Counted from the first letter of the stretch, positions 6,438-63,604 are shown. The stretch is DNA of 64,000 nucleotides from IMGVR_UViG_3300022602_000024:248001-312000, one strand, 5' to 3'. Notes: generated by a model not told the origin, from the letters alone. Numbers and translations are program-made.

Positions 6438-7424
6438 TTAGGTATCTGAACTGTTCTTCAGTTTAAACAGTTTCTTGGGCAAGTGCTGTTGTGCTGGTAA
6501 GTCTGTATTACTATACATAAATCCACACATGTTACAGGTGTTTTCGGGCGATTTTTGTTTCAAAAACCATTGATCTACTTCAGATTCGGTAGCATTTGTT
6601 GCCAATGATTCGTAGTCGTTGTAATAGCTGTACCAATCAGAATCTTCAGTTAACTTGTAGGTATCTAACGTATGATTTAATACTGCACGCGGAGGACATT
6701 TCCATAAACGATTGTCATATAACTGTATATAATTCTTGATATGACATACTGTATGATTATCATTTAGTGCAACAGCATTGGTGTATTCGTGAAAAGGTTT
6801 TAATGTGGGACCGTACCCGCGATAATGCGGCACAAAATGATCTTCATGTTGTTCTGTCATGTTTAACATGATCATCCGATGCCCGGCATTATTTTCCAGG
6901 CAGGTAAATTTTTTGTGTTCAGTATCCCAGGGTGTAGGAGCAACCCATTGCCATTGATAACTTGGTCTACGCAGTTGGTATTCTGCAAGAATTAAATCTT
7001 GTAAACGTTTATAGTTGTTTAATACCAGACTGGAATAAGGCTCCTCTAGTGTGTGATGTGTAACACTAACAAATGTTTGATTTTCAACAAACAGTTCTTC
7101 TATGTTGTTAAACAGTTTGTCTAGGTAGTATCCATTGGTGTTGAGCCATATAGGTAAGCGTTTACCATCGGTGGCCAAGGGCCAGTACTTGAATGCCAAT
7201 CTGAACCAATCCATGTACTTGGGGTGCATCAATGGCTCGCCACCAAACAAGTGTACTCGTGTGGGATCTATATATTGACTAAAGAACGCAATTGCAGGTT
7301 CTGCATCAGCAGGATTAACTAATCCGTTTATTTTTTGATGGTCACTAAATGTGCAACAACCTTCGCAGGCTAGTTGGCAACTGCGTATAATAACTAAATC
7401 TAGAAAATCAACTTTATATTTCAT
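6438..7424 (-). CDS. Radical SAM protein
   Basis: CQLACEGC, FGGEPLMHP, NTNG and a C-terminal Cys cluster (CNMC). Confidence 0.9.
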   Translation of the reverse strand: MKYKVDFLDLVIIRSCQLACEGCCTFSDHQKINGLVNPADAEPAIAFFSQYIDPTRVHLFGGEPLMHPKYMDWFRLAFKYWPLATDGKRLPIWLNTNGYYLDKLFNNIEELFVENQTFVSVTHHTLEEPYSSLVLNNYKRLQDLILAEYQLRRPSYQWQWVAPTPWDTEHKKFTCLENNAGHRMIMLNMTEQHEDHFVPHYRGYGPTLKPFHEYTNAVALNDNHTVCHIKNYIQLYDNRLWKCPPRAVLNHTLDTYKLTEDSDWYSYYNDYESLATNATESEVDQWFLKQKSPENTCNMCGFMYSNTDLPAQQHLPKKLFKLKNSSDT

Positions 7425-7431
7425 TAAGTAG

Positions 7432-8142
7432 TTATGCCATCAGATAATATAGTTCAACCTTTTTAAGCCACTCGTCAGACCAAAAAGCAAATTCTTCAGG
7501 CTCAACTACAAACTCTTGATACTGCGGAGTTGAGTATGTACCATCTTCTAACTGCTTGGGTTGCACACACATCATGATCACACCTGTGTCGATATTGGTA
7601 CCATGTGTGTCGTTGTGTGCAGCCGCATAAGCAGCCAACTGCATAAAGTAATCGCCAATGTTTTCACGCTTTTTGGGTTTGTTGGTTTGTTTAAAGTCAA
7701 TGATGCTGGGCTGGCCTTTCCACACACCAATGCAATCTGTGGTGCCAGCATACAGTCCACTATAGTAAACAGGAACTTCCACTCCCCAAAACTCATCGAC
7801 ATTACTCAAGCCTTCCATGATAACCTGCGCAGCCATGAACCAGCTGGGGTGTGCATAAGGGTTTGATGGCAAGGGTTTCATGTCATCTTGTAAGATGTAG
7901 GTCTCAAGATAACTGTGCATCCTTGTGCCACGATTAGCGGCTTCAGTGGTAATCTGTTGTGCACGTTCATTCCCAATGGCATTGCGCCAGTTTTGTAAGG
8001 CTTGGCGTGACTCTGCACTTTTAGTCTTGTCTAAGATAGTTGTCACACTGGGTACTTTACTGCCATCAGGAAGACAATAGTGTCGCTTGCCCTCTAAGGT
8101 TGTACGACTAAGAGGTGCATAATTGTATTGTTGTTTTATCAT
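7432..8142 (-). CDS. PD-(D/E)XK exonuclease (Cas4/MGME1-like phage exonuclease)
   Basis: PSVTTIL, RGTRMH, YAGTTD, IIDFKQT and QLAAYA motifs. Confidence 0.88.
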   Translation of the reverse strand: MIKQQYNYAPLSRTTLEGKRHYCLPDGSKVPSVTTILDKTKSAESRQALQNWRNAIGNERAQQITTEAANRGTRMHSYLETYILQDDMKPLPSNPYAHPSWFMAAQVIMEGLSNVDEFWGVEVPVYYSGLYAGTTDCIGVWKGQPSIIDFKQTNKPKKRENIGDYFMQLAAYAAAHNDTHGTNIDTGVIMMCVQPKQLEDGTYSTPQYQEFVVEPEEFAFWSDEWLKKVELYYLMA

Positions 8143-8592
8143 TTATACTTTCTTTATGTCTACGTTGGATTTGGTGAGAAATTGCACACCTGCATCACTG
8201 CGATAGTCTTCGGCATAAAATACACTACGAATACCGCTTTGGAATATGAGTTTAGCACAATCTAAACAAGGAGCATGGGTAATAAACATAGTAGCATCCA
8301 ATCCAGACTCTGTGCTTCTAGCCAGTTTAGCAATGGCATTTGTTTCAGCGTGAAGAACTTCGGGTTTGGTTTTTAACACAGTTCTGTGTATAGCACCTTC
8401 GTATCCTGAATAAAGTTCTACACTTTCATCTTCACAGTTGTTGTCCCATCCTGCAGGCATACCATTGTAGCCAATAGAGATGATTCTGTCGTCTTTGACA
8501 ATGATAGCACCAACATGCAATCTACGTGCTGAACTGAGGTCTGCAAACCTACGTGCAGTATCCATGTATGCTTGAATAAACTTTTCTTTCAA
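8143..8592 (-). CDS. dCMP deaminase
   Basis: [14 protein letters not shown] and PCLDC zinc motifs. Confidence 0.93.
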
Positions 8593-8909
8593 ACTCGAAA
8601 ACTTTCACCGCAACCACAACGGTCACGCTCATTAGGGTTGTTGAACTCAAATCCTTCGTTAAGACCGTTCTTAACATAATCTACTGTTAGACCCTGCAAG
8701 TAAACACAACTTTTTGGATCTACGAATAACTTACAGCCAGCGCAGTCAATGACTTGGTCATCGGGCGCAGGTGTATCTACGTATTCTAACACATAAGCAA
8801 GTCCGCTGCAACCTGTTGTTCTTACACCCAGACGAATTCCTTCGCCATGCCCTCTACGAGCAATAACTTGTTTAACTTTGTTAACGGCTTTTTCGGTTAA
8901 GGTAATCAT
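8589..8909 (-). CDS. iscA: Fe-S cluster assembly A-type carrier IscA
   Basis: TTGCSGLAY and C-terminal CGCGESF. Confidence 0.96.
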
Positions 8910-10228
8910 CGGTTGAAATATAGCGAAACTGGTTTACTAATATTTACGTTTGCTAGTTTATTATTAAAGTTTGATTTATCATCATCAGTCAATAAACTAT
9001 ATAGCTTGGAATTTAAAATAGAAAATTGTGTATTGGTTCTGATATCAAATTCAGCAGTGAAATTTAAATAAAAATTCCATAAATCATCATTGTCATCCCA
9101 TACATCCAATTCATTGATAGTTGCAGAAATAAATCCCTGCATTACCCTTGTTTTGTCTAGGTACCTATCAAATATTGGGTGAGCAGAACACTCTTTAAGT
9201 ATTGCTTTAAGTCCATTCCTATATCTAACTGGTAATGCTTGTATATCTAAGAAATTTGTTCTTTCAACCAAGGTAGTATTTAAAAATGTTATACTTTCAT
9301 TGGCATTAAACCAACCATACCAGTAATCTAGATATTCTTTTATGTAAAATATATTATTAAGACTAAAAACAGGATCTAAAGAAAAATCAAATTGTCTACG
9401 ACTATCAATAGATAAAAAAGATTTTTTAAATTCTAGCATTCGAGTTAGATTATTTTCAATTTTACTAAACTTAACCGGCCATCGAACATATTGATAGTTG
9501 TCGCCCACACTATCAATGCTCATGCCAAACCATATGCTTTTAAATTGCAAAAAGTAGTTTAATAACTCTTCTGACAGATTGACACTTAATGCAGTACTCA
9601 ATTTGATTCCGATACGTGGCGCCAGGCCTTGATCGATGCACCATTTTAATAATTTAAGGGCACCTGGTTGTATTAATGTTTCACCGCCTATTAAAAATAA
9701 ATGAAAAAATTTACAGTCGTTTACTTTATTGATAATATTGGTAGTGATAAAATTCCAATATTCATCTATTTCTGTTATATCTTGCGATAAGAAATCAGAG
9801 TCTGTATTGTTGGTTATCTTAGCAAAGGTAGTACTATCATACGTACTACAACTTCTACAACTCAGGCTGCAAAAGTTACTAAATTTAATTCTAAGTTCTG
9901 TGTTCCTGTTGTAATCAAATGGAAATTCGTTGGCGTTAAGTGCAATTATTGATCGGATACGCTCGGACTGCCCTCCGTGCAATTCTTCATTTTTGCACCT
10001 CCAACATGCAGCAGGAAGATATCCCTGCTCCATAGAACTTTTGATTTCCTTAAAGGGGTCATCTATATGAGAAATTGTAAATTTATTTGTATCAACATTA
10101 CAACAACAAATAATATCCATCTTTGCAGGATTACTACTATGACGTCTTACATCTGTTGTATTGTAAGGAAAAGGGCAGAAACTGGGATTATTTTTAGCCC
10201 ACTCTATTCTTTCATTGACTGTCTGCAT
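8906..10228 (-). CDS. Radical SAM protein with N-terminal twitch/SPASM-like Cys cluster
   Basis: CPFPY...CC...[12 protein letters not shown] and GGET; AT-rich; lies between iscU and iscA. Confidence 0.88.
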
Positions 10229-10605
10229 GTTTCTTTCGATAGTCTTCGACCGCGGCCTTTATGGCATCTTCGGCGAGGATACTGCAATGGATTTTAACAG
10301 GCGGCAAAGCCAACTCATTTGCAATGTCCGAGTTTTTGATTGTTGCAGCTGCATCCAATGTCTTGCCCTTGACCCACTCTGTAACAAGTGAGCTACTCGC
10401 GATAGCTGATCCGCATCCATAGGTTTTAAATCTTGCATCTGTGATAATCCCATCTTTAACTTTGATTTGGAGTCTCATTACATCTCCGTTAACCGCAAGC
10501 TGGGGCACCGACTAAGCCGGTCCCAACTTGCGCATCTCCTTTATCAAAAGTTCCCACATTTCGGGGATTTTCAAAATGATCTATTACATCTTTACTGTAA
10601 GCCAT
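10212..10605 (-). CDS. iscU: Fe-S scaffold IscU interrupted by a 7-nt insertion containing TAA (recoded gene or pseudogene)
   Basis: ATG at 10605 gives MAYSKDVIDHFENPRNVG...GAPACG then TAA (10489-10491). The gene resumes in the +1 frame as GDVMRLQIKV...YGCGSAIASSS...LPPVKIHCSILAEDA. Removing 7 nt gives a 128-aa IscU. Confidence 0.9.
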
Positions 10606-11191
10606 AACTATCTCCTGTTATTGATTCTACTGTCTCTTTAGACTGATAACTATCCCATTTTTTTCTATTCTCTTCACCTAATATATATCTTAGATTTTTC
10701 CTACTACCAATTACTGCTGGAGGTATTCCTAATTCAAATCCTTGTTTATACGGTATAATGTGATCCAATTGGTAATCTGTTTTATGTTTACCAGTTATTT
10801 TAGATATGCCTTCTTTTTTCATAGCATAAACTGTTCTATATGTTGCTCTCCTACACTCCCTTTTATATGCTTCAAATTCATTATCCGTATAGTTTTTTGG
10901 GCGAAGGTTGTTTAATTTACCATCTTTGTTGGGATTATTTTCTAACCATTTTTTTCTTTGGTGTTCATTAGATAATCCTTTATTCCAGCCCCATCCTTTT
11001 TTAAGGCCATCTCTATTTTGTTTTTCCTTTTGTTCTTCACTAAGTGTTATTCCTTTGTTCCAAGGAGTATGCCCGGGGCGGTTATTAGGGTTTTTACAGG
11101 CCTGAGAACAATAATCCAAAAATCGTGGTTTAGTAATAAATGTATCGTTGCAAAAAAGGCACGCCTTTGATATACCATACTTGTTTTTCAT
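10592..11191 (-). CDS. Free-standing HNH-family homing endonuclease
   Basis: CLFC...CSQAC zinc motif, PWNKG/GWNKG NUMOD-like repeats and YQLDHIIP...NLRYI...ENRKK; late promoter at 11197-11202. Confidence 0.82.
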   Translation of the reverse strand: MKNKYGISKACLFCNDTFITKPRFLDYCSQACKNPNNRPGHTPWNKGITLSEEQKEKQNRDGLKKGWGWNKGLSNEHQRKKWLENNPNKDGKLNNLRPKNYTDNEFEAYKRECRRATYRTVYAMKKEGISKITGKHKTDYQLDHIIPYKQGFELGIPPAVIGSRKNLRYILGEENRKKWDSYQSKETVESITGDSYGLQ

Positions 11192-11227
11192 ACAAGTATT
11201 TATGATTGGCGTGCCCGTTTGTGAGTA

Positions 11228-21289: not shown

Positions 21290-22328
21290 GTGCTAGTTTC
21301 TTCTTCTTTAACTCAATTTTTAATCTACTGGTTTCTTTGTAATGCAGAATGGTTTTTAAAACAAACAATTTGCCATAACGTTCCACTGCGGCACTGACAT
21401 CTTTGACATCATCTTCCCACTCAGGGAAACTCACACTCCATCCATATTCTACAGCATCATCAACTAACCGTGCCCCAGCCCGATCTCGATCGGGCACTAG
21501 GATAACTTCACGTGCTAGACTATCAATAATGTCGGCTTGTTGTTCATTGCATTGATTACTTAGTATAGCAACACCATCAATGGCCATGGCATCAAATGGT
21601 CCTTCAACCACAATCACAAACTTTGCATCTGTGGGTTGCAGATCTATGTTAAACACATAGTTAGGTTCGTGACTGTTAAAGTACTTGGGTTTAACATAAG
21701 GATCAAATGCTCTTGCAGTATAACCAATGGTTTTGTTCTTCCAAGTAAAAGGAACAATCACACGTTTGTTCAAGTTGTATTGCGATTCCGGAGTCCACAT
21801 TAGATTGTATTTGATCATATCAATCTCACGGTCCGCGGTGTACATGACTGCTGAGTGATAATCTGCTGGTACATTGTATACATCAGGATTTACTGCACCT
21901 AGGGTATAAAAAGTTTCCCATCCAGTGAAGTTCATTGCTGACTCTGGCAAGGGTCTTGGCTTGAACTCTACTTCTAGTCGTGCTTCTTCTACAAATGTTT
22001 CTGGTGCTACTAGATCTTTAACACGAATGGCTTCAATGACCAGGCGTTTGACTTCTGTTTCCGCGGCACCCAACCACGACAATAGTTTTCGAAACTTATA
22101 AGTTAAGTGGCGTCCAGGAACATAACTGGCTTTGAAGTTGCAGTTAAAGCAATGATAACTTACTCCTCCGTCGGGATTGGCTACTAAACCACCACGGCCA
22201 CGGGTATCTGCTGATTCACCGTTGTGATGACAACAAGGTGCATTAAAACTGATCCATCCGCTTGTGCTGTTGGTCTTCCTTTTATTAGGAAGCAACTGCA
22301 TTACAGAATCTTGAATACTATTAAACAT
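21282..22328 (-). CDS. DNA primase (zinc finger plus TOPRIM)
   Basis: APCC...YHCFNC zinc motif, PKY, VVEGPFDA, PDRDRAG and KDV. Confidence 0.92.
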   Translation of the reverse strand: MFNSIQDSVMQLLPNKRKTNSTSGWISFNAPCCHHNGESADTRGRGGLVANPDGGVSYHCFNCNFKASYVPGRHLTYKFRKLLSWLGAAETEVKRLVIEAIRVKDLVAPETFVEEARLEVEFKPRPLPESAMNFTGWETFYTLGAVNPDVYNVPADYHSAVMYTADREIDMIKYNLMWTPESQYNLNKRVIVPFTWKNKTIGYTARAFDPYVKPKYFNSHEPNYVFNIDLQPTDAKFVIVVEGPFDAMAIDGVAILSNQCNEQQADIIDSLAREVILVPDRDRAGARLVDDAVEYGWSVSFPEWEDDVKDVSAAVERYGKLFVLKTILHYKETSRLKIELKKKKLAHD

Positions 22329-22367
22329 CTTAGTAGTATACACTACTTTTTGGATTAAATCAACAGG

Positions 22368-23132
22368 TTAGATACCATATCTTGAGCGCAATGCCGTAAA
22401 GTTTTGGGTAACTTGCGTTGGGGTTAGCGCGGCACTGTATATCTTCCAGGCTCCGATATATCCGTTGAAGTAGTTAGCAACACCACCTATGTATGAGCCA
22501 CCGTTACCGCCACCAGTTGCGTCGGGCCTGCCCATACTCAAATATGTTGCATAGGGAGTTGTACCTGGCGGATTAGATTTGGTTCCTGCAATAGTCCCAC
22601 CTGCCGCACCATTTACATATGTTCTCACTGTGGCTAAATCATAAGTCATAACTATGTTGTACCATGTACTAGAACTCCATCCCGATTGAGCAATGGTACC
22701 TCCCAAATTGTAAACACCTGCGTTGATAGAACCGGCAATAAAACCCATTTGTGCATCAGTCCACCCGCTGTTCCATGTGCCATTGCTCCATTCAGCAATC
22801 AATGTGCCAGCAGTGCTAGCAGAAAGATTTCTACACCATACATCAAAGGTAAATCCATTATTTAATGTTGTACCATATCCGCCAGTGTATCCAAAGTATT
22901 GGCTACTTGCACTTGATAGTTGTAGCACAGTAGTTCCATTAACTGTTGTAGTAGATGGACTATTATATATTGTAGCATTGTAAGCGTTGGGACTGCTATC
23001 TAAGAATGTACTACCACTGACGCCAGTTGCAGCATCGTAGTTAGCAACCAAATTGGTTGTTACAATCATAGGAACATAGTCGTTCACAATAGTGATACCG
23101 TTGCCAATTTTGATTCCGCCACCTATGTTCAT
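22368..23132 (-). CDS. LamG/concanavalin-A-like domain protein
   Basis: LVANYDA, FTFDVW, WYNIVMTYD, YVNG and IYSAALT..QV.QNF. Confidence 0.85.
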   Translation of the reverse strand: MNIGGGIKIGNGITIVNDYVPMIVTTNLVANYDAATGVSGSTFLDSSPNAYNATIYNSPSTTTVNGTTVLQLSSASSQYFGYTGGYGTTLNNGFTFDVWCRNLSASTAGTLIAEWSNGTWNSGWTDAQMGFIAGSINAGVYNLGGTIAQSGWSSSTWYNIVMTYDLATVRTYVNGAAGGTIAGTKSNPPGTTPYATYLSMGRPDATGGGNGGSYIGGVANYFNGYIGAWKIYSAALTPTQVTQNFTALRSRYGI

Positions 23133-23839
23133 ACACCGTACCTTGTTCTTGTTACCAAATAATTCTGTGCTATTTCTGCGCTGGTTAATACACGATTATA
23201 AATCAGTGCTTGACCAATTTTGCCTTGTAGTGTTTCGCTACCACCAACGTTAGTAGCACCAACCTGTAATAAACTTGATGTGACATTAAGGCCACTAGCT
23301 GTTTGTGAGCCAACTTGACTGCCGTTGAGCCAAATACTTCTAGTAGTCCCGTCCCATTGTGTAAGAATATAGAACCATTGTGTCACAGGACTGAGTGAAG
23401 TTGTAACGGCATAATCATTACCATACCAATAGGCCACAAAAGCATTAGTAGTAGTGGTTCTAAATTGATTGGTTTGACTACCTGTAGTTGAATTACCAAT
23501 ACCAATGATACCTTGCCCATTCCAAGTCGACCCCAATTGGATCCACGCCGACATACTATAAGGACTCGATCCTGTGGGCAAAGTAGTGGACGATTTGTTA
23601 AAGTATCCGTTACTGGTCAAAGTAAAATATCCACCACCTGTACTGGTATAGGAGATGTTGCTAGAGTTCTGCATGGTGACGTTGTTGTTTTGCCCGCTTA
23701 GGTCGTACCATGTGGTGCCTGTGCCAGGATAACTAGTGGTGTTGGCGGCATCAAGATACAATTGTAGATTTGATGTAACAATTGGTTGCTGATCAATTAC
23801 AAATCCAACCCCGCTTAAGGTAATACCACGTATGATCAT
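23129..23839 (-). CDS. LamG/concanavalin-A-like domain protein
   Basis: LYLDAANTTSYPGTGTTWYDLSG and IYNRVLTSAEIAQNY. Confidence 0.87.
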   Translation of the reverse strand: MIIRGITLSGVGFVIDQQPIVTSNLQLYLDAANTTSYPGTGTTWYDLSGQNNNVTMQNSSNISYTSTGGGYFTLTSNGYFNKSSTTLPTGSSPYSMSAWIQLGSTWNGQGIIGIGNSTTGSQTNQFRTTTTNAFVAYWYGNDYAVTTSLSPVTQWFYILTQWDGTTRSIWLNGSQVGSQTASGLNVTSSLLQVGATNVGGSETLQGKIGQALIYNRVLTSAEIAQNYLVTRTRYGV

Positions 23840-24558
23840 ATGCCGTACCTTGTTCTGATTGAGGCATGGTTTTGTGCTATTTCTGCGGCCAACAATGCCC
23901 GACTGTAGACTGCCACTACACTGATATCACCATACCAGTAGTTGTCACCATATGCTACATTTTCGCCACCATTGCTGACCCATTGTGCTAGTGTCTGTCC
24001 TGTGGCACTATACACCGACTGTCCGTTAAAATAGCCCGTCATATTTCCACTACTGTCTTGAGTGACACCCACTGTAAACCATTGCCCAGTTGTCAACGTT
24101 AGAGGATTTGACACTATAGCACCACTTCCAAAACTGCCGTGTATCTCGTAAACTCCCGAACTGGGACTATAGATATAGGTATTGAAGTTTCTGGTACCAG
24201 TTGGGGTACCAAACAAACAACGATAAAGTCCGCTACCAAAACTGGCATTCATTCTTGCCGCAACAAATACAGTCTTACCTGTGTAGGTGGTGTTGTACTT
24301 GCCGGTGGGAGTACTGGCCAGCTGTGTACCGGCACCATTAAACGAAAAATAACTAGCGGCACCAGCACTGGTAAAAGGTGGACTGCCAGTGAATGTGGCG
24401 TTGTTGGTATTTGAGCTTAAATCAGTCCAAGTTGCACCTGATCCTGCGTAACTGGCAGTTTGCCCAGCATCTAGGTACAGCAATGCGTTGGTTTTAACAA
24501 ACGGTTGTTGATCAATTACATACCCAACGTTGTAAAGTGTGGCACCTTTGATTATCAT
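23836..24558 (-). CDS. LamG/concanavalin-A-like domain protein
   Basis: LYLDAGQTASYAGSGATWTDLS and VYSRALLAAEIAQNH. Confidence 0.87.
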   Translation of the reverse strand: MIIKGATLYNVGYVIDQQPFVKTNALLYLDAGQTASYAGSGATWTDLSSNTNNATFTGSPPFTSAGAASYFSFNGAGTQLASTPTGKYNTTYTGKTVFVAARMNASFGSGLYRCLFGTPTGTRNFNTYIYSPSSGVYEIHGSFGSGAIVSNPLTLTTGQWFTVGVTQDSSGNMTGYFNGQSVYSATGQTLAQWVSNGGENVAYGDNYWYGDISVVAVYSRALLAAEIAQNHASIRTRYGI

Positions 24559-24559
24559 A

Positions 24560-27500
24560 TTACCAATCTATCTTTAGTTGACGTACCCAGTTTTGAGCAG
24601 TGGATCCTCCAGTATATGCCGCTACACCAAAGTAATTTCCAGCTGGAGTCCAACTGCCAATGTTAACTGATCCTTGATATATTTCATTGAGATATACTTC
24701 TAACATACGGTTGCCGTTTTGTATCTTGCGAATCTTTAGGGTCAAGTTGTAGAAACTGGTGTAACTAGCGTTCCATAATGTAACTCCAGATGTTACATAG
24801 TTACCGTTACCAATATAGGGAATATTAGTTTGTGTGCCGTTAACATAAACCTCAAACTGACTTGCACTACTATAATAATGGTTCATAACTGCGATACCAC
24901 CAAGAGTGTTGGTATTACCGGGATTACCTGTGATGGCAGCATTAGATCCAAAGTAGATCCATTGTCCATCTGCACCGGTGCCTCCACTAGCACCAATACT
25001 AGCAGTTATAACCATATCATAGTTATAATTGATTGTACTACTATTCCAGTTAATGTAGCCAGACTGTGTAGTACTTGTTGTGGTTAGTTTTAATCCGTAT
25101 GCTTGTGTGCTATCCCAGGTAGCGTTGCCGCCAATAGTACCACTTGGAGTAAATGAACTTAGTGCAGAAGTGGAGTTGGCTTGCCATGTATCCCACAAGA
25201 AACGTGTCTTGGGTCCGCTTGCACCAGCAGCAATAATATTACCAGTGGATGAAACATTACCATATACTGTTAGCTGATTGGTGTTCCCATCCAAGTTCAT
25301 TCGTGTTACCCCAGGAGTAAACCAACGGAATGCGCCATTGTAGTTGTCTATTTCCCAGTTCTGTGTGGTATTGCCATTGAAGAATCCAACACGCGGTGAT
25401 TGTGCTCCAGTTGTGCCAGAATTACCAACAAACACACCAGATATGGTTGTACTTTCATTGAATGCACCAGTAAACTGTCCGTATCCTGAAGTTACCAAAT
25501 TGCCGGCAGTCACGTTACCACTAAATGTAGCACTAGTACCAATACTATTTCCATACTGTGTACCAATGATATTACCGGCGTTTAAATTACCAAGGACGGT
25601 TACGGTATTACCAAACCAAGCAGGCGTAATACTTGTAACAACAAACTGACCCGTACCATCCGGGTTAACTGTAATGTTGGCATTGGTTCCTACCACTGTA
25701 CCAATGGTGCCGCTAGTGTTCATTACAAGATCACCATTGACCGGCATTGTCAAATTGCCAGTAGTATCAAATACATAATTGTAACTGCCGGATACCAATG
25801 TCACATTAGGTTGTGTACCATAGATGTTGCCCACACTACTGATGCCAGTCAGTGCAGCACCATTACCTACAAAGTAGTTGGCAGTAACATTGCCAGTATA
25901 GGTAGCAGATGTGCCTATGCTATTGCCGTATTGTGTGCCAATGATATTGGCTGCTTGTACATTGGCACTGGCAATGACATTACCAATGACATTAATTTGG
26001 CTTTGACTAAATGTAGCAGTCGATACTCCGCCAATTTGTACTACTGCATTGCCACCACTTGTAGCAAATGACAAACTGCTTGTACCATTGCTAACAGTGG
26101 TAATTGAGTTTAATATGTTTACACCATTAGCAAATAAATGATTGTTAGAAATTACGTTACCAACAGTGATATTTGCTGATCCACCAACTGATGATAGAAT
26201 AATTGATCCATTTGAAATTATGTTAACGTTTGCAGGTAATGCTAAGTTACCATCTAACCCAAACACATAATCAGCAAGTCCTGTAAGTAGACTTGAGCTA
26301 ACTCTATTAGGATTATAATTGGTTAGAATAACAGTAGCACCTAGCCCACCTGGTAAAGTTAGAATATCACCATTCTTATATCCTGTACCAGGGTTGGTTA
26401 CAACATAGCTGTTAGGGTAGCCGCCAGTAGCACCATAACTTGCTGTCATGCCTGTACCCGAACCACCTGTTAGACTTTGGTTATTGTATGGTGGACTGTT
26501 ATATCCACCAGCTCCTGTATAGGTGCTAAGTTGATTGTATGTGCCAAAAGCACGAACTGTCAAATTACCATTGCTGGTTCCAACCGCATTTGCAACAAAC
26601 ACATTACTAGCAGCAGCCGCAGTAGTAGTGCCCAGGTTGATGGTAGTTGCGGCACCGCCCATGGAGATTGTGGTTGCTGTACCGTTAAATATTGCAGCGG
26701 ATGTTTGGTTGGTTGTGATAGTACCAATGGTGTTAAGTACTAATCCAGCAGTTGATGTAAATCCAACACCAGTGACTGCCCCAGCACTAGTGATACCAAC
26801 TGAGTTATATGTAGTCAATGCGGTACTGGTCAAAGCCATTCTAGTGCCCATGCCAGCTACTGCGTTAGCAGTACCGCTACCCTGTCCGTTCCAATAGAAG
26901 CTACCGCCATCTATATAAAATTGTCCAGCACCATTGGAGTAGGTGTTGCGAATAAACATAGCACCGTTGCTGCCAAAGTAAGCGTTGTTTAGAATCTGTG
27001 TGGTCGATAAGTTTGTGCCCGTACCTGTACTGATCGTTGTATTGTTACCAACAAATAACTGTGTTATGTTAGCCTGTGTAGGATATGTATTGACGTTGCC
27101 TAATGCAACAATACTATTAGCACTCAACATTGCGACTACGTTGGCATTGCTGTATGTTGTTCCGCCGCCTGATCCACTTGTGAATACTGTACCATTGGCG
27201 TATAAAATATTGCCAGTTGTGGGTATAGTTAAGTTACCAGTGTTGTCAAATATCCAATTGTAGCTGCCAGCTTGTAGTGTTACATTGGGTTGAGTACCAT
27301 AGATATTACCCGCTTGACTATAAGTGAGTCCGGTTAATCCTGATGCTGGTCCATAGAAGTTGGCGGCAATAATATTGCCTGGGGCAATCACGTTGCCTGC
27401 AGATGTTATGGTCAAACGAGTTACTAATGCATTATTACTGGCACCCGGAGTCTTTGTAGCAAATTGTATATTGGCCGAGTAATCACCATTGTCAATGGAA

Positions 27501-30500
27501 TATATTCTTGCTTCTGGTGGTTGTCCTGCACCTGTATAGGTGTATAAGTCAATAGCAGTACCAGCACCAGCTTGTCCGCCAGTGTTGACCAAACTCAATA
27601 CACTGGCCACGTTGCCAGTATTGGCCACTGTAATATTCAGTGGTGTTGCGTAATACAAATTACTAGCAGCCGCACCAATAAACACATTACTGGTTGTGAC
27701 AATATTGGATGAGATACCATTGCTTAAATAACTAGCAACATTGGTGTTACTGTATGTGCTTCCTTGTGGATTAGCAACCAAATAAGCAGCCACATTACTA
27801 TTGCTATAGAATGTTTGTGTTGTTAGGTATGCAGCAACATTGGTATTTGAGTAGGTGCCGCCTATACCAGTCAAAATACTGACACCATTGGCATAATTAT
27901 AACTGTTGCTATAAATGCCATTAGACACAATCATTGAGCCGTTGCCGTACAAGGATGCTATGTTGGAAGTACCAGCATACCATTTGTAGCCAAATGAATT
28001 GGTGGCTTGCGGAATACTGAACCAAGTAAATCCCGACTCAATGCCAACGGCATAGTCAACATTGGTGCTATTAACTTGTGGCCAAAGAATAAGTTTGCTG
28101 CCAACACTACTGGTTGTGAATGTGGGAGTACCAAATCCACTGGCAGTCCAACTGATGTTGCCAGTGAGACTGTTCAATGATGGTGTGGCCGAAATTCCTG
28201 ACAGTATGTTGACGCCATTGGCATAGGTGAATTTGTTTGCCGATACACTATTCACCACAGTAACATTGTTGGCAAACCAAGCATTTTGTGTGTAGCCCAC
28301 AAGTTCAAATATGCTGGCTCCGCCAGTTTGTCCCACTGTGAATCCATCGGGACCTGCTTGTCCTTGTCCAACCACAACATCTACAGTGGCTTGGGCTGTG
28401 GTTTTTGTATAGGCGCCAAGACCGTAACCAATTCTCCAGTTTTGATCTGTTGTTCTGAAATCCAACCAACTGCCAATTGATAGTCCAACATTGCCTGTTG
28501 TGATGTTGCCCAACAAGTACGAGGCAACATTGGCATTGGCATAACTGCTGGTTCCAAAATTTAAATTAGCGTATGTGTAGAAACTTCCAATATTGGCCTG
28601 TAGTGTCGTAATATTAGAACTGAATGCAGCATCATTTGCTTGTATACTAGTAATAATACTAGACGTTGGCAGGTATTGTGCAACCTGTAAGTTACCGTAA
28701 GTAATAATAGGACTGTATCCACCAATTACTTGAATGTCAAACCATTGATTTGATATAGTATTATTAGATAAAGAACTACCTGATGCTGAATATAATTGAA
28801 GTTTAATATTAGCTGTTGAGCTTGTAGTAAGTATTGCTTCAGCAGTAGGAGATCCAGATCCATATGTAAGCCCAGCTGAAGTTTGCGGGACCAATACTGG
28901 ACTACCTATTACTGCACCATTACTAGAAAATACCCATTGTACAAAAGGTTGGCCAAGATTATTGGTGACTCCAGCACTTAAATCTCCTATAGCACCCATT
29001 AATCTATATGTTTTGCCAGCTTGTAAAGTAATATTTCCCGAATTACTATCATAAGAAATATCACTACCTGCAATATTATCTATACCTGAAAATAGTATAG
29101 TAAAGGTACCAGTCCCACTTAAACTTTGTGTTGTGTTTGTTCCATGAGCATAACTTGCAACTACCCCGGTATTAACATATGGTAATCCATTTGCATAGAA
29201 TAACCCGTTTGTATAAAGATTACCAAAGTTACCGCTATACGTTGACAAATATGCATTAACTTGTGTATTGCCATAATTACTACTTGTAAATGGTGTGCCA
29301 TTAGCATAGAAGAATCCTGCAGCTAACACATTGCCAGCAGTGACATTACCACTATGACCCACATTGCCTGCAAAGTAACTGTCGCCAACTACACCCAGTC
29401 CACCTCCGGCAACCACCAGAGTTTGTGAGTTGGTACCAGCAACGTTTCCTGTACCAATTGCGCCAACTGTGGCTTGAGCAGCAGTGATGGTAAATGCAGT
29501 GGGAGTTGAATTATTGTTGATTCTAAAAAACAAAGAACCTGAACTTGCAGCATTTAACCAAGTATTAGTTCCGTTGACCAAAATACTATAGTTACCATTG
29601 GCAGGTGTAATTGCAGTTGAATACAAAGCTGCATAACTACCGCCGCCAGTCCAAGGTTGTAGTGCAATACCTTGTGTGCCTGTACCGCCTTGTAGTGCTC
29701 CAGTTGTTATCACACTACCAGCATACAAGTTTCCGGCAACGCCTACACCACCAGCAACTTGTAGAGCACCTGTTGTTGTGCTGGTGCTGGTAGTGGTTTG
29801 TGCCAATATCAAACCAACATTGTTTTTAAAACGTCCTTGATAGTTGCTGGTTGTACTAAATCCACCTGTGGTAAACACAATGTCATTTGGTCCACCAGTA
29901 CCCAGTATCAAATTACCATTGGTGTTTGCAGTTCCTTGCACATATAGATATCCATCAAGTGCACGATTAAGTTCATTGCCAGTGCCGCCAACAAACCCAC
30001 TGCTGTTGATACCCATATCAATGTAACCAGCACCAGCGGAGCCAGTATCAGCAGTAGCCACATAATCAGTGCTGGCATTGATGCCTGAATTGATATTTTG
30101 ATGATTTACTTGTGCATAACCATTGAAGTTGGTTGAGTTTTGTAATACCGTTTGTGGCTGATAATTATAACCAGAAAGAATACCTGCGTATAGTGCACCA
30201 AAACCTGCGGCGTTACCTTGGAACGTACCAGTAGCAATAGTAATACTATTAACATTACCAACATAATTAATGTTGCCTGTTACTGTTAAATTTCCAGCAG
30301 TCAGATTACCAGCATAAGTCGGCAGATACGTTGACAAATATGCCGACACATTGGCATTGGTATATGAACCGTTCTGTAATGTAGCGACGAGTACATTAGC
30401 CGCCGACACGTTGGCGTTAATGGTATCAATTAATGTTTGTTGCGCACCAGCATTTGCAGTCAATGATGTAGTAAATGAATCCACATAGGTCTTCATTGCT

Positions 30501-31102
30501 GAATTTGCAGTGACTATGGCCAAGTTGGCAGCAGTCACATTGGCATTTATATTAGTAATACTGTTAGTAATAGCACCTATTGCACTGCCTTCGGCAGCTA
30601 AGTTAGCGGCAATCTCTCCTAGTGTATCCAAAGTACCCGGAGCACTGTTGATCAAGTTGTTGATTGCAGTACTGATTTGGTAGTCAGTGTAGCCTTTTAG
30701 AGCAGTATTGGCTGTAATAATGGCTGCATTAGCAGCCAAGATATTTGCATTTATAGCCGAAATAGTAGCGTCATGCGGCAAATATACTGCCACATTGGCA
30801 TTGCCGTAAACCAAATTCTGTAATTCTTCTAAGTTTACATTGGCAAAAAATGATTCAAGCTGGGTAATATTGCCTGTGATACCTGCTATGTTGGCTATTT
30901 CGGTTTGTAATGTAGCAATGGTATTGTTGAGAGTGTTGACATTTGCACCAATTTGGTGTCCACCTTGTGTGACACCATCTTGTACATATACTGAATTGTC
31001 ATCTGTGTTTAATATCAACTCACCGTGAGGACCGGTATATGTACTAATCGTCAGAGTATTACCGCGTTTAATTAGAATTTGTTTTATATTGAGATTAGAC
31101 AT
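24560..31102 (-). CDS. Giant tail fibre / adhesin (2180 aa) with C-terminal L-type lectin-like domain
   Basis: N-terminal IKRG...GELILNTD...QDGVTQGG; APGTLDTLGEIA fibre motif; Gly/Asn/Thr-rich repeats; GADG motif near the C-terminus. Confidence 0.88.
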   Translation of the reverse strand: MSNLNIKQILIKRGNTLTISTYTGPHGELILNTDDNSVYVQDGVTQGGHQIGANVNTLNNTIATLQTEIANIAGITGNITQLESFFANVNLEELQNLVYGNANVAVYLPHDATISAINANILAANAAIITANTALKGYTDYQISTAINNLINSAPGTLDTLGEIAANLAAEGSAIGAITNSITNINANVTAANLAIVTANSAMKTYVDSFTTSLTANAGAQQTLIDTINANVSAANVLVATLQNGSYTNANVSAYLSTYLPTYAGNLTAGNLTVTGNINYVGNVNSITIATGTFQGNAAGFGALYAGILSGYNYQPQTVLQNSTNFNGYAQVNHQNINSGINASTDYVATADTGSAGAGYIDMGINSSGFVGGTGNELNRALDGYLYVQGTANTNGNLILGTGGPNDIVFTTGGFSTTSNYQGRFKNNVGLILAQTTTSTSTTTGALQVAGGVGVAGNLYAGSVITTGALQGGTGTQGIALQPWTGGGSYAALYSTAITPANGNYSILVNGTNTWLNAASSGSLFFRINNNSTPTAFTITAAQATVGAIGTGNVAGTNSQTLVVAGGGLGVVGDSYFAGNVGHSGNVTAGNVLAAGFFYANGTPFTSSNYGNTQVNAYLSTYSGNFGNLYTNGLFYANGLPYVNTGVVASYAHGTNTTQSLSGTGTFTILFSGIDNIAGSDISYDSNSGNITLQAGKTYRLMGAIGDLSAGVTNNLGQPFVQWVFSSNGAVIGSPVLVPQTSAGLTYGSGSPTAEAILTTSSTANIKLQLYSASGSSLSNNTISNQWFDIQVIGGYSPIITYGNLQVAQYLPTSSIITSIQANDAAFSSNITTLQANIGSFYTYANLNFGTSSYANANVASYLLGNITTGNVGLSIGSWLDFRTTDQNWRIGYGLGAYTKTTAQATVDVVVGQGQAGPDGFTVGQTGGASIFELVGYTQNAWFANNVTVVNSVSANKFTYANGVNILSGISATPSLNSLTGNISWTASGFGTPTFTTSSVGSKLILWPQVNSTNVDYAVGIESGFTWFSIPQATNSFGYKWYAGTSNIASLYGNGSMIVSNGIYSNSYNYANGVSILTGIGGTYSNTNVAAYLTTQTFYSNSNVAAYLVANPQGSTYSNTNVASYLSNGISSNIVTTSNVFIGAAASNLYYATPLNITVANTGNVASVLSLVNTGGQAGAGTAIDLYTYTGAGQPPEARIYSIDNGDYSANIQFATKTPGASNNALVTRLTITSAGNVIAPGNIIAANFYGPASGLTGLTYSQAGNIYGTQPNVTLQAGSYNWIFDNTGNLTIPTTGNILYANGTVFTSGSGGGTTYSNANVVAMLSANSIVALGNVNTYPTQANITQLFVGNNTTISTGTGTNLSTTQILNNAYFGSNGAMFIRNTYSNGAGQFYIDGGSFYWNGQGSGTANAVAGMGTRMALTSTALTTYNSVGITSAGAVTGVGFTSTAGLVLNTIGTITTNQTSAAIFNGTATTISMGGAATTINLGTTTAAAASNVFVANAVGTSNGNLTVRAFGTYNQLSTYTGAGGYNSPPYNNQSLTGGSGTGMTASYGATGGYPNSYVVTNPGTGYKNGDILTLPGGLGATVILTNYNPNRVSSSLLTGLADYVFGLDGNLALPANVNIISNGSIILSSVGGSANITVGNVISNNHLFANGVNILNSITTVSNGTSSLSFATSGGNAVVQIGGVSTATFSQSQINVIGNVIASANVQAANIIGTQYGNSIGTSATYTGNVTANYFVGNGAALTGISSVGNIYGTQPNVTLVSGSYNYVFDTTGNLTMPVNGDLVMNTSGTIGTVVGTNANITVNPDGTGQFVVTSITPAWFGNTVTVLGNLNAGNIIGTQYGNSIGTSATFSGNVTAGNLVTSGYGQFTGAFNESTTISGVFVGNSGTTGAQSPRVGFFNGNTTQNWEIDNYNGAFRWFTPGVTRMNLDGNTNQLTVYGNVSSTGNIIAAGASGPKTRFLWDTWQANSTSALSSFTPSGTIGGNATWDSTQAYGLKLTTTSTTQSGYINWNSSTINYNYDMVITASIGASGGTGADGQWIYFGSNAAITGNPGNTNTLGGIAVMNHYYSSASQFEVYVNGTQTNIPYIGNGNYVTSGVTLWNASYTSFYNLTLKIRKIQNGNRMLEVYLNEIYQGSVNIGSWTPAGNYFGVAAYTGGSTAQNWVRQLKIDW

Positions 31103-57230: not shown

Positions 57231-57318
57231 TGGCGGAAACGGTGAGATTTGAACTCACGGAACTTTTCAAGTCGCTGGTTTTCAAAACCAGAGCCATAGA
57301 CCACTCGACTACGTTTCC
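57231..57318 (-). tRNA. tRNA-Ser(TGA)
   Basis: Cloverleaf with long variable arm; CTGGT-TTTGAAA-ACCAG; G73 and encoded CCA. Confidence 0.93.
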
Positions 57319-57481
57319 AATAAATACTGCATGATATCCGAAGATTTAGAGTTTGCTTATAGACTTTTGTACACACAGTTGGCCAACAAACCGTATGCGC
57401 CTGCGGCATATCATACTAATTCCAGGGATTTTGTGCCGGACCCTATACTAACGGATCCAAAGTTCATGCTAGATGAAGATT

Positions 57482-57557
57482 TGGTGCAACCTCCAGGAAT
57501 CGAACCTGGTTCAACGGCTCTTCAGACCGCCGCTATGACCACATCAGCTAAAGTTGC
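57482..57557 (-). tRNA. tRNA-Phe(GAA)
   Basis: GCGGT-CTGAAGA-GCCGT, GGTTCGATTCC and encoded CCA. Confidence 0.93.
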
Positions 57558-57588
57558 AGATAAATAAGTTTAACTTCAAAGGATTAAT

Positions 57589-58335
57589 ATGTCTTCACCA
57601 GGAATTACAATCGGACCAGGTATTACAATCGGCGGCGGAATAGACATCGGCGGCGGATATAACTCTTACAGCAGTGGCAACGGCAGTTTGCAGTTTTCGA
57701 ATACCGGAGATGTAAAAATTACCGACAGTAATAGATTGAGTTTAAGCACAGGAAACAACTGGACCATTGAAGGTTGGTTTTATTTTAATTCTTATTCGAA
57801 TCAAGACCGCTATTTTGACAAATATAACAACAGCAACAACGAATACATATTCTGGGCCGAAACTGCTGGAACACGTTCGTTTGTTACTTATTCAGCGGGT
57901 GGCGGAACTCAAAACATGGACTGTGCATTTAACAATCCTCCACTGAACACTTGGGTTCATTTGGCCTTTGTAAGATCTGGCAGCACATTCAATGTTTATC
58001 AAAACGGCACAGTGGTTGGAACTTCTACTGGAATAGTTGGTTCTGTTAATGTCAATTCTGGATCCGCATTTGAACTGGGATATAGCGGAAGCTATAATGT
58101 CAGCAACTTTAGGATAGTGCCCGGGGTCGCAGTATATACTGGTGCATTTACGCCACCTGCTGCACCTTTAGGTGTCACTCAATCTAGTGGTACTAATATC
58201 AGTGCAATCACTTCAGGTCAAACTGCACTATTATTGAATACTTATACTGCAACGCCTTTGTTGGATGCATCAGGTTATTATGGTAATGTACCAGTTAATG
58301 GCACAATTACCTACTCATCTGCAGCTCCATTCTAA
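57589..58335 (+). CDS. LamG/concanavalin-A-like domain protein
   Basis: GITIGPGITIGGG N-terminus, WTIEGWFY, WVHLAFVRSG and SNFRIV.G.AVYT. Confidence 0.85.
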   Translation: MSSPGITIGPGITIGGGIDIGGGYNSYSSGNGSLQFSNTGDVKITDSNRLSLSTGNNWTIEGWFYFNSYSNQDRYFDKYNNSNNEYIFWAETAGTRSFVTYSAGGGTQNMDCAFNNPPLNTWVHLAFVRSGSTFNVYQNGTVVGTSTGIVGSVNVNSGSAFELGYSGSYNVSNFRIVPGVAVYTGAFTPPAAPLGVTQSSGTNISAITSGQTALLLNTYTATPLLDASGYYGNVPVNGTITYSSAAPF

Positions 58336-58339
58336 TATT

Positions 58340-58414
58340 TGGTCTGGCCTGCAGGAATCGAACCTACATTCGTAAGGTAGAAGCCTACTGTACTATCCAT
58401 TGTACTAAAGACAG
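58340..58414 (-). tRNA. tRNA-Arg(TCT)
   Basis: GTAGG-CTTCTAC-CTTAC, T-arm and CCA; one acceptor-stem mismatch. Confidence 0.9.
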
Positions 58415-58420
58415 AATGCG

Positions 58421-58507
58421 TGGTGCGGGATACCAGATTTGAACTGGTACGCTTTATTAAGCGGCGGGTTTTAAGCCCGCTGGGTCTGCCGATTCCCCCA
58501 ATCCCGC
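58421..58507 (-). tRNA. tRNA-Leu(TAA)
   Basis: GCGGG-CTTAAAA-CCCGC, long variable arm and CCA. Confidence 0.93.
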
Positions 58508-58527
58508 AAAAAATACTTAATTAAAAG

Positions 58528-58601
58528 TGGTGCCCCACGACAGAATCGAACTGCCATCACAGGATTACAAAACCAGTGTACTACCATTGTACTAGTAGGG
58601 C
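58528..58601 (-). tRNA. tRNA-Thr(TGT)
   Basis: Loop TTTGTAA, T-arm and CCA; two U-U mismatches in the anticodon stem. Confidence 0.85.
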
Positions 58602-58602
58602 T

Positions 58603-58676
58603 TGGCAGGGGAACTAGGGATCGAACCTAGAATAGCAGAATCAAAATCTGTTGTGATACCATTTCACTATTCCCCA
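58603..58676 (-). tRNA. tRNA-Gln(TTG)
   Basis: Loop TTTTGAT, G73 and CCA; U1-U72 mismatch. Confidence 0.9.
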
Positions 58677-62426: not shown

Positions 62427-63548
62427 ATGAACAATTATTGCCCTGACTTATTCAACACTATCTTTATACAAAAAGTCAATGAATCAGAGTCCGAGATTGG
62501 ACATTGTTGTGTTAGCAAGTTGAGTGACCCAGTATCCACTATTGATTTTCAAAGTGATTTCTTAGCTACCAATCGACAACATTTTTTATCAACAGGCAAT
62601 CTCCCGCCTGCTTGTGTTTACTGCACCACTGCTGAATCCAAAGGGGAAATTTCAAGACGCACTAAACGGTCAAGACCTTATGTAGAAAACAATAACTATC
62701 CAACTGAAGTAGTGGTAGAACATTTAGATTACAATTGCGACAATATATGTAATTTGAAATGTATAATGTGTAGCGGATACTACAGCAGTGCCTGGAGAGA
62801 AGATGAAGTAGCACTAGGTTTCAGAATAGATTATCGTACTAAACCTACCAAACACAACACAATGATATACGATGCTGATGTGAGTAAACTCAAAAGCATT
62901 TATTTCAACGGAGGCGAACCCTTAATGACTCGGGATCATATAAATGTGCTGAATCATGCGTTGTCTAATAGTCAAGAACCACAACATATTCGGATTAGCT
63001 ATAGCAGCAACGGCACCTTTCCGATGACTGACGAGATGGCAGATTTGTGGAAACAGTTCGAAGCAGTTTACATCAACTTCAGCATTGACGCCACAGAAAA
63101 AGAATTTGAGTACATACGGTTTCCTGCAATATGGGCTGACGTTGAAAAAAATATTGATACTTTCCGCTTGCCAAATTTGGTAACAAAAATTACTGCTACC
63201 GTAGGAGTACACAATATATTGTACTTTGACAAATTGTACCATTGGGCAGCTAAACGCAACATAGAAATATATGTACAAGATACCAATGGTAGATCACAAC
63301 TTGCAATACAAAACTTTCCCAGGGCTGGCAAAGATCGTTTGATTGCTTATCTTAATAAATTACCAGAGTCTGGCAGTAAACAATCGTTGTTGAATCTTGC
63401 ACACAACATCAATAACGACGGGCATGCACGATGGATCGAGTATCTTAACAAACTAGACCGTATGCGAGGCAACAACTGGAGAAATAGTCTAAGTAGACTG
63501 AATGAAATCAACAGGTCATGGATGTATGGAGTAAGGGGTGAGATTTGA
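62427..63548 (+). CDS. Radical SAM protein with twitch-like N-terminus
   Basis: HCC, CVYC, CNLKCIMC, FNGGEPL, FSIDA and YIRFP; TATAAATA promoter at 62413-62420. Confidence 0.92.
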   Translation: MNNYCPDLFNTIFIQKVNESESEIGHCCVSKLSDPVSTIDFQSDFLATNRQHFLSTGNLPPACVYCTTAESKGEISRRTKRSRPYVENNNYPTEVVVEHLDYNCDNICNLKCIMCSGYYSSAWREDEVALGFRIDYRTKPTKHNTMIYDADVSKLKSIYFNGGEPLMTRDHINVLNHALSNSQEPQHIRISYSSNGTFPMTDEMADLWKQFEAVYINFSIDATEKEFEYIRFPAIWADVEKNIDTFRLPNLVTKITATVGVHNILYFDKLYHWAAKRNIEIYVQDTNGRSQLAIQNFPRAGKDRLIAYLNKLPESGSKQSLLNLAHNINNDGHARWIEYLNKLDRMRGNNWRNSLSRLNEINRSWMYGVRGEI

Positions 63549-63604
63549 ACTCACGGTTGTACTGGTTTGCAATCAGTTGCCTTGGACCACTCGGCCACCC
63601 TTAC
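63527..63604 (-). tRNA. tRNA-Cys(GCA)
   Basis: Loop TTGCAAA, U73 and CCA; 3' end overlaps the end of the convergent radical SAM gene. Confidence 0.9.

Follow-up and report, generated by a model that had tools for sequence, protein, structure and literature searches.

Programmed translational bypassing has rested on very few natural cases, namely T4 gene 60 and its homologues, yeast mitochondrial byps, and a few Streptomyces phage genes. In T4 gene 60 (Huang 1988; Bonocora 2011, PMC3182709; Manning & Atkins 2022, preprint 10.1101/2022.08.31.505936) a Gly take-off codon is followed by a stop, a Gly landing codon lies directly before the next conserved residue, and the 50-nt insert between them sits in a highly conserved coding stretch. 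An SD-like element and mRNA structure 5' of the take-off are involved, some members replace the stop by a sense codon, and the gene for the HNH-type homing endonuclease mobA lies next to the insert and moves with it as one cassette, the insert blocking self-cleavage (PMC5009743) and surviving loss of the endonuclease. The mitochondrial byp elements of Magnusiomyces (as cited in PMC5009743 and in 10.1101/2022.08.31.505936) are likewise numerous mobile inserts in conserved genes with loosely matched take-off and landing codons, although they are 27-55 nt long, organellar, lack an SD and are not linked to homing endonucleases. Shorter events are known as synthetic "stop-hops" in E. coli (Weiss et al. 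1987, as cited in PMC5009743), which were engineered and of low efficiency, and bypassing has been proposed, with some experimental support, for blocks of 7-10 nt in the terminase of Streptomyces phage phiHau3 and related prophages (PMC10732093). In those three genes an internal SD and local structure are invoked, but the trigger is the rare UUA codon, the proposed role is regulatory (sensing host state), there is no endonuclease link, and no family-wide covariation has been shown. A 2016 review stated that shorter natural counterparts with matched take-off and landing codons were long expected and that no natural in-frame stop-hop was known (PMC5009743).

During our analysis of a 64,000-nucleotide stretch of a large freshwater phage genome (IMGVR_UViG_3300022602_000024:248001-312000, hereafter the window; the matching IMG/VR contig is 354 kb) we saw that the gene for the iron-sulfur scaffold protein IscU was broken by a stop codon plus one base. 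A preliminary description had read this as a candidate programmed short hop from the first Gly codon to the following GGA, or a +1 shift, beside an HNH gene, and the sequence is as it was described. The two pieces together match Pfam NifU_N end to end, removal of 7 nt gives a 128-codon gene with the canonical A-C-G-D, and the residues Cys37, Asp39, Cys63, His105 and Cys106 are visible in the translations, although they are contiguous only if the gap is skipped. This is the only iscU in the window, which has about 40% G+C and belongs to a large phage that encodes ribonucleotide reductase, GroEL, DnaB, IscA and radical SAM proteins; iscU sits in a block with IscA and two radical SAM ORFs, and the phage Fe-S assembly genes may serve its own radical SAM enzymes. 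Coordinates are collected in the table, in which L numbers denote our individual loci.

Table. Features of the window and of other loci mentioned in the text.
Feature	Sequence	Coordinates	Strand	Description
Upstream ORF	window	10592..11191	minus	199 aa, probable HNH-type homing endonuclease with an N-terminal Zn-finger; its stop overlaps the iscU start by 14 nt
iscU N piece	window	10492..10605	minus	codons 1-38 (MAYS...GAPACG), then TAA at 10491-10489; NifU_N positions 1-35, E 3.4e-10
SD-like motif	window	10536..10540	minus	AGGAG inside the coding sequence, 3 nt 5' of the hairpin
Predicted mRNA hairpin	window	10494..10532	minus	11 bp plus 6 bp, 3-nt loop, 2-nt bulge; last pair uses the first G of the take-off codon
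Junction	window	10500..10482	minus	GCT TGC GGT TAA C GGA GAT
Proposed take-off codon	window	10492..10494	minus	GGT (Gly38)
Gap, inferred to be untranslated	window	10488..10491	minus	TAA-C, a stop plus one base
Proposed landing codon	window	10485..10487	minus	GGA, directly before Asp39
iscU C piece	window	10212..10484	minus	codons 39-128 (DVMRLQ...; 90 aa, 10484..10215) plus the stop, in the +1 frame relative to the N piece; NifU_N positions 36-125, E 8.5e-36
Mobile block, approximate extent	window	10464..11214	minus	endonuclease gene, iscU 5' part, junction and about 30 nt beyond
Fe-S block	window	6438-10228	minus	IscA (8589-8909), two radical SAM ORFs (8906-10228 and 6438-7424), dCMP deaminase (8143-8592)
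Long ORF	window	24560-31102	minus	2180 aa
tRNA genes	window	57231-58676 and 63527-63604		seven: Ser, Phe, Arg, Leu, Thr, Gln, Cys
Second iscU interruption, example	L275	3848-3958		at LPP|VKIHCS
Intact allele, possible revertant	L078	2950-3024		12 of 17 hairpin pairs
Split gene calls	L264	3103-3505		38-aa ORF and overlapping 108-aa ORF
Split gene calls	L265	877-1279		38-aa ORF and overlapping 108-aa ORF
Bacterial isc operon	L001 (CAKLQH020000011.1)	21502-29765		INPHARED record labelled "Acinetobacter phage MD-2021a"; iscR, iscS, iscU, iscA, hscB, hscA, fdx

We first asked whether the interruption might be an assembly error, a recent pseudogene, or an intron or repair scar without function. The exact 28-nt junction was present in 8 independent IMG/VR contigs, and relaxed, degenerate scans of IMG/VR and of JGI metagenomes found the same site interrupted in 172 loci, mostly from freshwater lakes; since the two collections overlap, we count unique 108-nt contexts, of which there were 106, rather than contigs. 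These alleles are diverged, with synonymous sites saturated (pS about 0.8 in the C half), yet the halves stay open in all but one of 169 N pieces and in all but a few of 159 complete C pieces. pN/pS was 0.19 (N half) and 0.18 (C half), against 0.17 and 0.15 in 75 intact phage alleles, indicating that the part downstream of the stop is translated in its own frame. A few alleles carry further defects, e.g., L173 has TAT (Tyr61) changed to TAG shortly before its contig ends and may be a decayed copy, and L149, L153 and L165 lack one A from GTA AAA ATC near VKIHCS, which could be a further recoding site requiring a -1 shift on the A run, gene decay, or a homopolymer sequencing error. On the comparative data, however, a dead gene or artefact is very unlikely, none of the alternatives raised in the preliminary description (intron scar, recent pseudogene, assembly error) is supported, and the resemblance it noted to the start of the T4 td intron plays no part. 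Megablast of the locus against INPHARED phages gave no match, and protein-level hits there were limited to an intact Kyanoviridae iscU and records labelled as phage that carry a whole bacterial isc operon, one of which (L001) looks like host chromosome rather than phage. No iscU with this interruption pattern was found in the genomes of 185,579 bacterial and archaeal species, the single hit being a chance match in an unrelated Acidimicrobiales gene.

The first 47 loci all had a 7-nt insert, with TAA, TGA or TAG after the first Gly codon, but a scan that placed no requirement downstream of the stop changed this picture. A GGN occupies the take-off position in all 106 contexts and a second GGN always sits directly before GAY GTN (Asp39, Val40), while the gap between them varies from 3 to 7 nt, giving hops of +6 (3 contexts, e.g., GGT TAG GGC), +7 (68, the window type), +8 (17, e.g., GGA TGA CA GGT and GGT TAA CT GGA), +9 (15, e.g., GGT TAG ATA GGC) and +10 (3, e.g., GGC TGA ATTA GGT). 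All three frames therefore occur and indels inside the gap are tolerated, as is expected only if the gap is not decoded. The gap starts with TGA (52), TAG (30), TAA (21) or TGT (3), so that a stop is the first gap codon in 103 of 106 contexts and a sense codon in three. The simplest reading that fits every allele is a hop of peptidyl-tRNA-Gly from the first GGN to the second. Wobble matching is nevertheless loose: the wobble base is identical, or a U/C pair that one tRNA can read, in 59 contexts, U/A in 35 (including the window, where GGU and GGA are normally read by different tRNA-Gly species), and another mismatch in 12, and the restriction to A/A, C/C, T/C and T/A pairs seen in the first 47 loci did not hold in the larger set. 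There is no tRNA-Gly gene among the seven tRNA genes of the window. In addition, some gaps create a GGG one base before the in-frame landing codon (e.g., TGA G GGC), so landing precision is not explained.

These data bear on two other ways of decoding the message. For the window allele alone the frames fit a +1 frameshift at GGU-UAA-C, like prfB or antizyme, in which the U of the stop is skipped and AAC GGA GAU are read to give IscU with two extra residues (C-G-N-G-D); the +1 frame is open from 10508, and as in prfB a stop in a weak context (followed by C) sits in the A site, and an rRNA-binding SD-like element and tension on the mRNA may favour forward movement. However, a uniform +1 shift cannot serve the +8, +6 or +9 alleles, which have the same hairpin and site, the inserted residue would be N, D, R, E or V in an otherwise invariant loop, tRNA-Gly cannot re-pair on GUU, and the SD-like motif lies about 42-46 nt upstream, separated from the site by a hairpin, rather than 3 nt upstream of a CUU-U slip as in prfB, so we regard this alternative from the preliminary description as improbable. 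Readthrough likewise cannot serve the +7, +8 or +10 alleles. A split IscU, with a 38-aa peptide and a C fragment started separately at AUG41 that assemble with each other, was considered because GGAG lies 5 nt before ATG41 in the window and could act as its SD, and because endonuclease insertions are known to split T4-like genes into two assembling products (10.1101/2022.08.31.505936). Eleven of 106 contexts, though, have no ATG, GTG or TTG in the first 25 codons after the gap because Leu replaces Met41, excluding a separately initiated C fragment there, and GGAG at the landing site is absent in 15 of 43 contexts. The Asp39 and Val40 codons upstream of that AUG vary only synonymously (GAT 87 and GAC 19; GTA 60, GTC 22, GTT 17 and GTG 7), the landing Gly codon is always kept, and the model has no use for a hairpin ending at the take-off codon; we consider it equally unlikely.

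Although this was not noted in the preliminary description, the interrupted alleles also carry a hairpin 5' of the site. In the window its MFE is -27.9 kcal/mol (z -3.6). On an alignment of 30 alleles 95.3% of cells pair, against 27-39% when the partners are slid, four pairs show compensatory double changes, and 0 of 500 shuffles reach the covariation score; over 56 unique sequences, pair 15-45 is CG 28, AU 24, UA 3 and GC 1, and pair 18-42 takes six different standard types. Fixed G-U pairs place the structure on the sense strand, that is, in the mRNA. The five outer pairs form in 30 of 30 interrupted alleles, against a mean of 1.35 of 5 in 75 intact alleles, and hairpin MFE is -25.6 against -13.1 kcal/mol. 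Building the 5' strand required amino-acid changes, as the two residues before VGTG are [A/P/T/S]-[Q/H] in all interrupted alleles and mostly D-T, D-S or T-D in intact ones; one intact allele (L078) has A-Q before IGTG, forms much of the hairpin, and may be a revertant that lost the gap. A GGAG, GAGG or AGGA motif lies 3-6 nt 5' of the stem in 43 of 43 interrupted contexts, against 12 of 75 intact alleles. A candidate GGT GGT T GGT in L154/L158 forms only 7 of 17 hairpin pairs and was discarded. We found no conserved structure downstream of the gap (GGAG...CUCC pairs in some alleles only), and Rfam gave no match around the site. Selection for a stop as the first gap codon in the upstream frame and for an SD-like motif are translation-level signatures, which argues against removal of the gap at the RNA level by polymerase realignment from the first GG to the second or by hairpin-guided cut-and-ligate editing. 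Although the hairpin ends 7-10 nt before the resume point, a geometry that may resemble hairpin-driven forward movement of RNA polymerase, no precedent is known for such a jump without a homopolymer run, and on the comparative data this reading is unlikely.

We propose that the interruption is a programmed translational bypass, a short stop-hop, and on comparative evidence alone we put the probability of this explanation at roughly 0.75. In this model the ribosome translates iscU codons 1-38; with peptidyl-tRNA-Gly on GGU in the P site and UAA in the A site the tRNA lets go of the mRNA, which slides 7 nt until the same tRNA re-pairs with GGA; and decoding resumes at GAU (Asp39) to give one canonical 128-aa IscU with the C-G-D cluster-binding loop intact. 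That non-standard decoding restores IscU is very likely and that it is a Gly-to-Gly hop is likely, whereas the roles we infer for the hairpin and for the gap in protection are at best somewhat more likely than not. At take-off the inner stem would lie at about -27..-13, at or beyond the ribosome's edge, and the outer 3' strand (-10..0) inside the ribosome, so the suggestion that zipping of the outer stem draws mRNA out of the exit side, in the same direction as translocation and while the stop keeps the A site empty, is only geometric reasoning. With the hairpin closed the SD-like motif is about 8-14 nt from the landing codon (9 nt in the window), within or near the normal SD-to-P-site distance, and could steady the landing; however, hop length did not correlate with stem extension or SD spacing. 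Pairing of exiting mRNA as a forward driver has been proposed for gene 60 (10.1101/2024.12.09.627546).

The ORF upstream of iscU belongs to a family of more than 415 proteins from phage metagenomes, 64-80% identical, with invariant Cys pairs and an invariant D143-H144-x-x-P147...N166...N175 motif. Its assignment as an HNH nuclease is only weakly supported: weak, below-threshold Pfam HNH hits were found in 12 of 40 members and NUMOD3 in 4 of 40, a Foldseek search with an AlphaFold model (pLDDT 75.6) gave Cas9 HNH domains as best hits but not significantly (E 0.12), and PDB sequence searches gave nothing meaningful; we call it a probable HNH homing endonuclease. The gene, whole or as a remnant, abuts iscU in 118 of 163 interrupted loci with enough flank and in 0 of 77 intact ones, and two distant family members looked up independently also sit directly upstream of split NifU_N genes. 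The N piece of iscU is 96.5-100% identical in nucleotide sequence to the window in L003, L004, L006, L007 and L008, while the C part is only about 70% identical in all of these except L007, a near-identical relative (97%). When the window was compared with L008/L010, identity was mostly 96-100% from about -720 to +30 around the take-off codon, a block of about 750 bp, and mostly 35-75% outside it. Interrupted alleles are scattered on the iscU tree, L003, L059 and others keep the gap without the endonuclease gene, and L058 and L097 keep only a 41-47-aa remnant of it. Thus the endonuclease gene, the first 114 nt of iscU, the hairpin and the gap behave as a mobile cassette, and this is the life cycle described for T4 mobA/gene 60. 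By analogy, the gap probably breaks the endonuclease's target in the conserved iscU sequence without costing the protein.

A second, unrelated site in iscU of other phages (L270-L280, L101, L151, L152, L194, L198, L210, L242 and L246) has the same architecture. Here the conserved LPP|VKIHCS is interrupted in frame, reading CCN, then TAA or TAG, then CTN (CCG in one case), then GTN, preceded by GAGGAGG and by a hairpin GGGGAGA...UCUCCCY that is fully compensated to GGGCAAA...UUUGCCC in two loci; there are 15 contexts. The site occurs with or without the first cassette, and the window's own LPPVKIHCS is intact. In 6 of 9 loci inspected an ORF of about 243 aa lies directly downstream of iscU, with a DUF559/Vsr-like domain and the same Zn-finger as the HNH family. 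This repeat of the design is the strongest hint that the device is modular. A different kind of insert, intein-like and with an open frame of 427-434 codons, follows FKTYG|C at the second cluster Cys in L230, L250 and L236, alleles that also carry the hop cassette.

Compared with gene 60, the gap here is 3-7 nt instead of 50 nt, leaving no room for an A-site take-off stem-loop, the SD-like motif lies 5' of the hairpin rather than inside the gap, the host gene is iscU and is not split into two genes, and the strongly conserved structure is the 5' hairpin, which in gene 60 relatives is the least conserved element (10.1101/2022.08.31.505936). The +6 and +9 alleles have exactly the geometry of the synthetic stop-hops, but at a natural, conserved site equipped with a hairpin and an SD-like motif. 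We found no paper linking iscU with recoding. Public gene calls in NCBI metagenome assemblies split this iscU in two (L264 and L265), so such genes are being miscalled as broken. With more than 100 natural variants, including hops of 6-10 nt, all three stops, one sense codon and a hairpin with compensatory changes, the family amounts to a ready-made mutagenesis series, and it allows a test of whether mRNA refolding at the ribosome exit can drive forward sliding, which is still unresolved for gene 60. It is possible, at slightly better than even odds, that phage homing endonucleases of at least two kinds (HNH-like and Vsr-like) carry a portable, modular recoding device consisting of an SD-like motif, a hairpin that refolds on the mRNA leaving the ribosome, a take-off codon, a stop and a nearby landing codon, which, dropped into an invariant coding stretch, would destroy the nuclease's own target while the ribosome hops the few extra bases. 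This would be the first large natural family of short stop-hops, and the clearest case in which an exit-side hairpin, rather than an A-site structure or a nascent peptide, drives bypassing, and would extend the idea that homing endonucleases protect their own genomes with translationally silent inserts.
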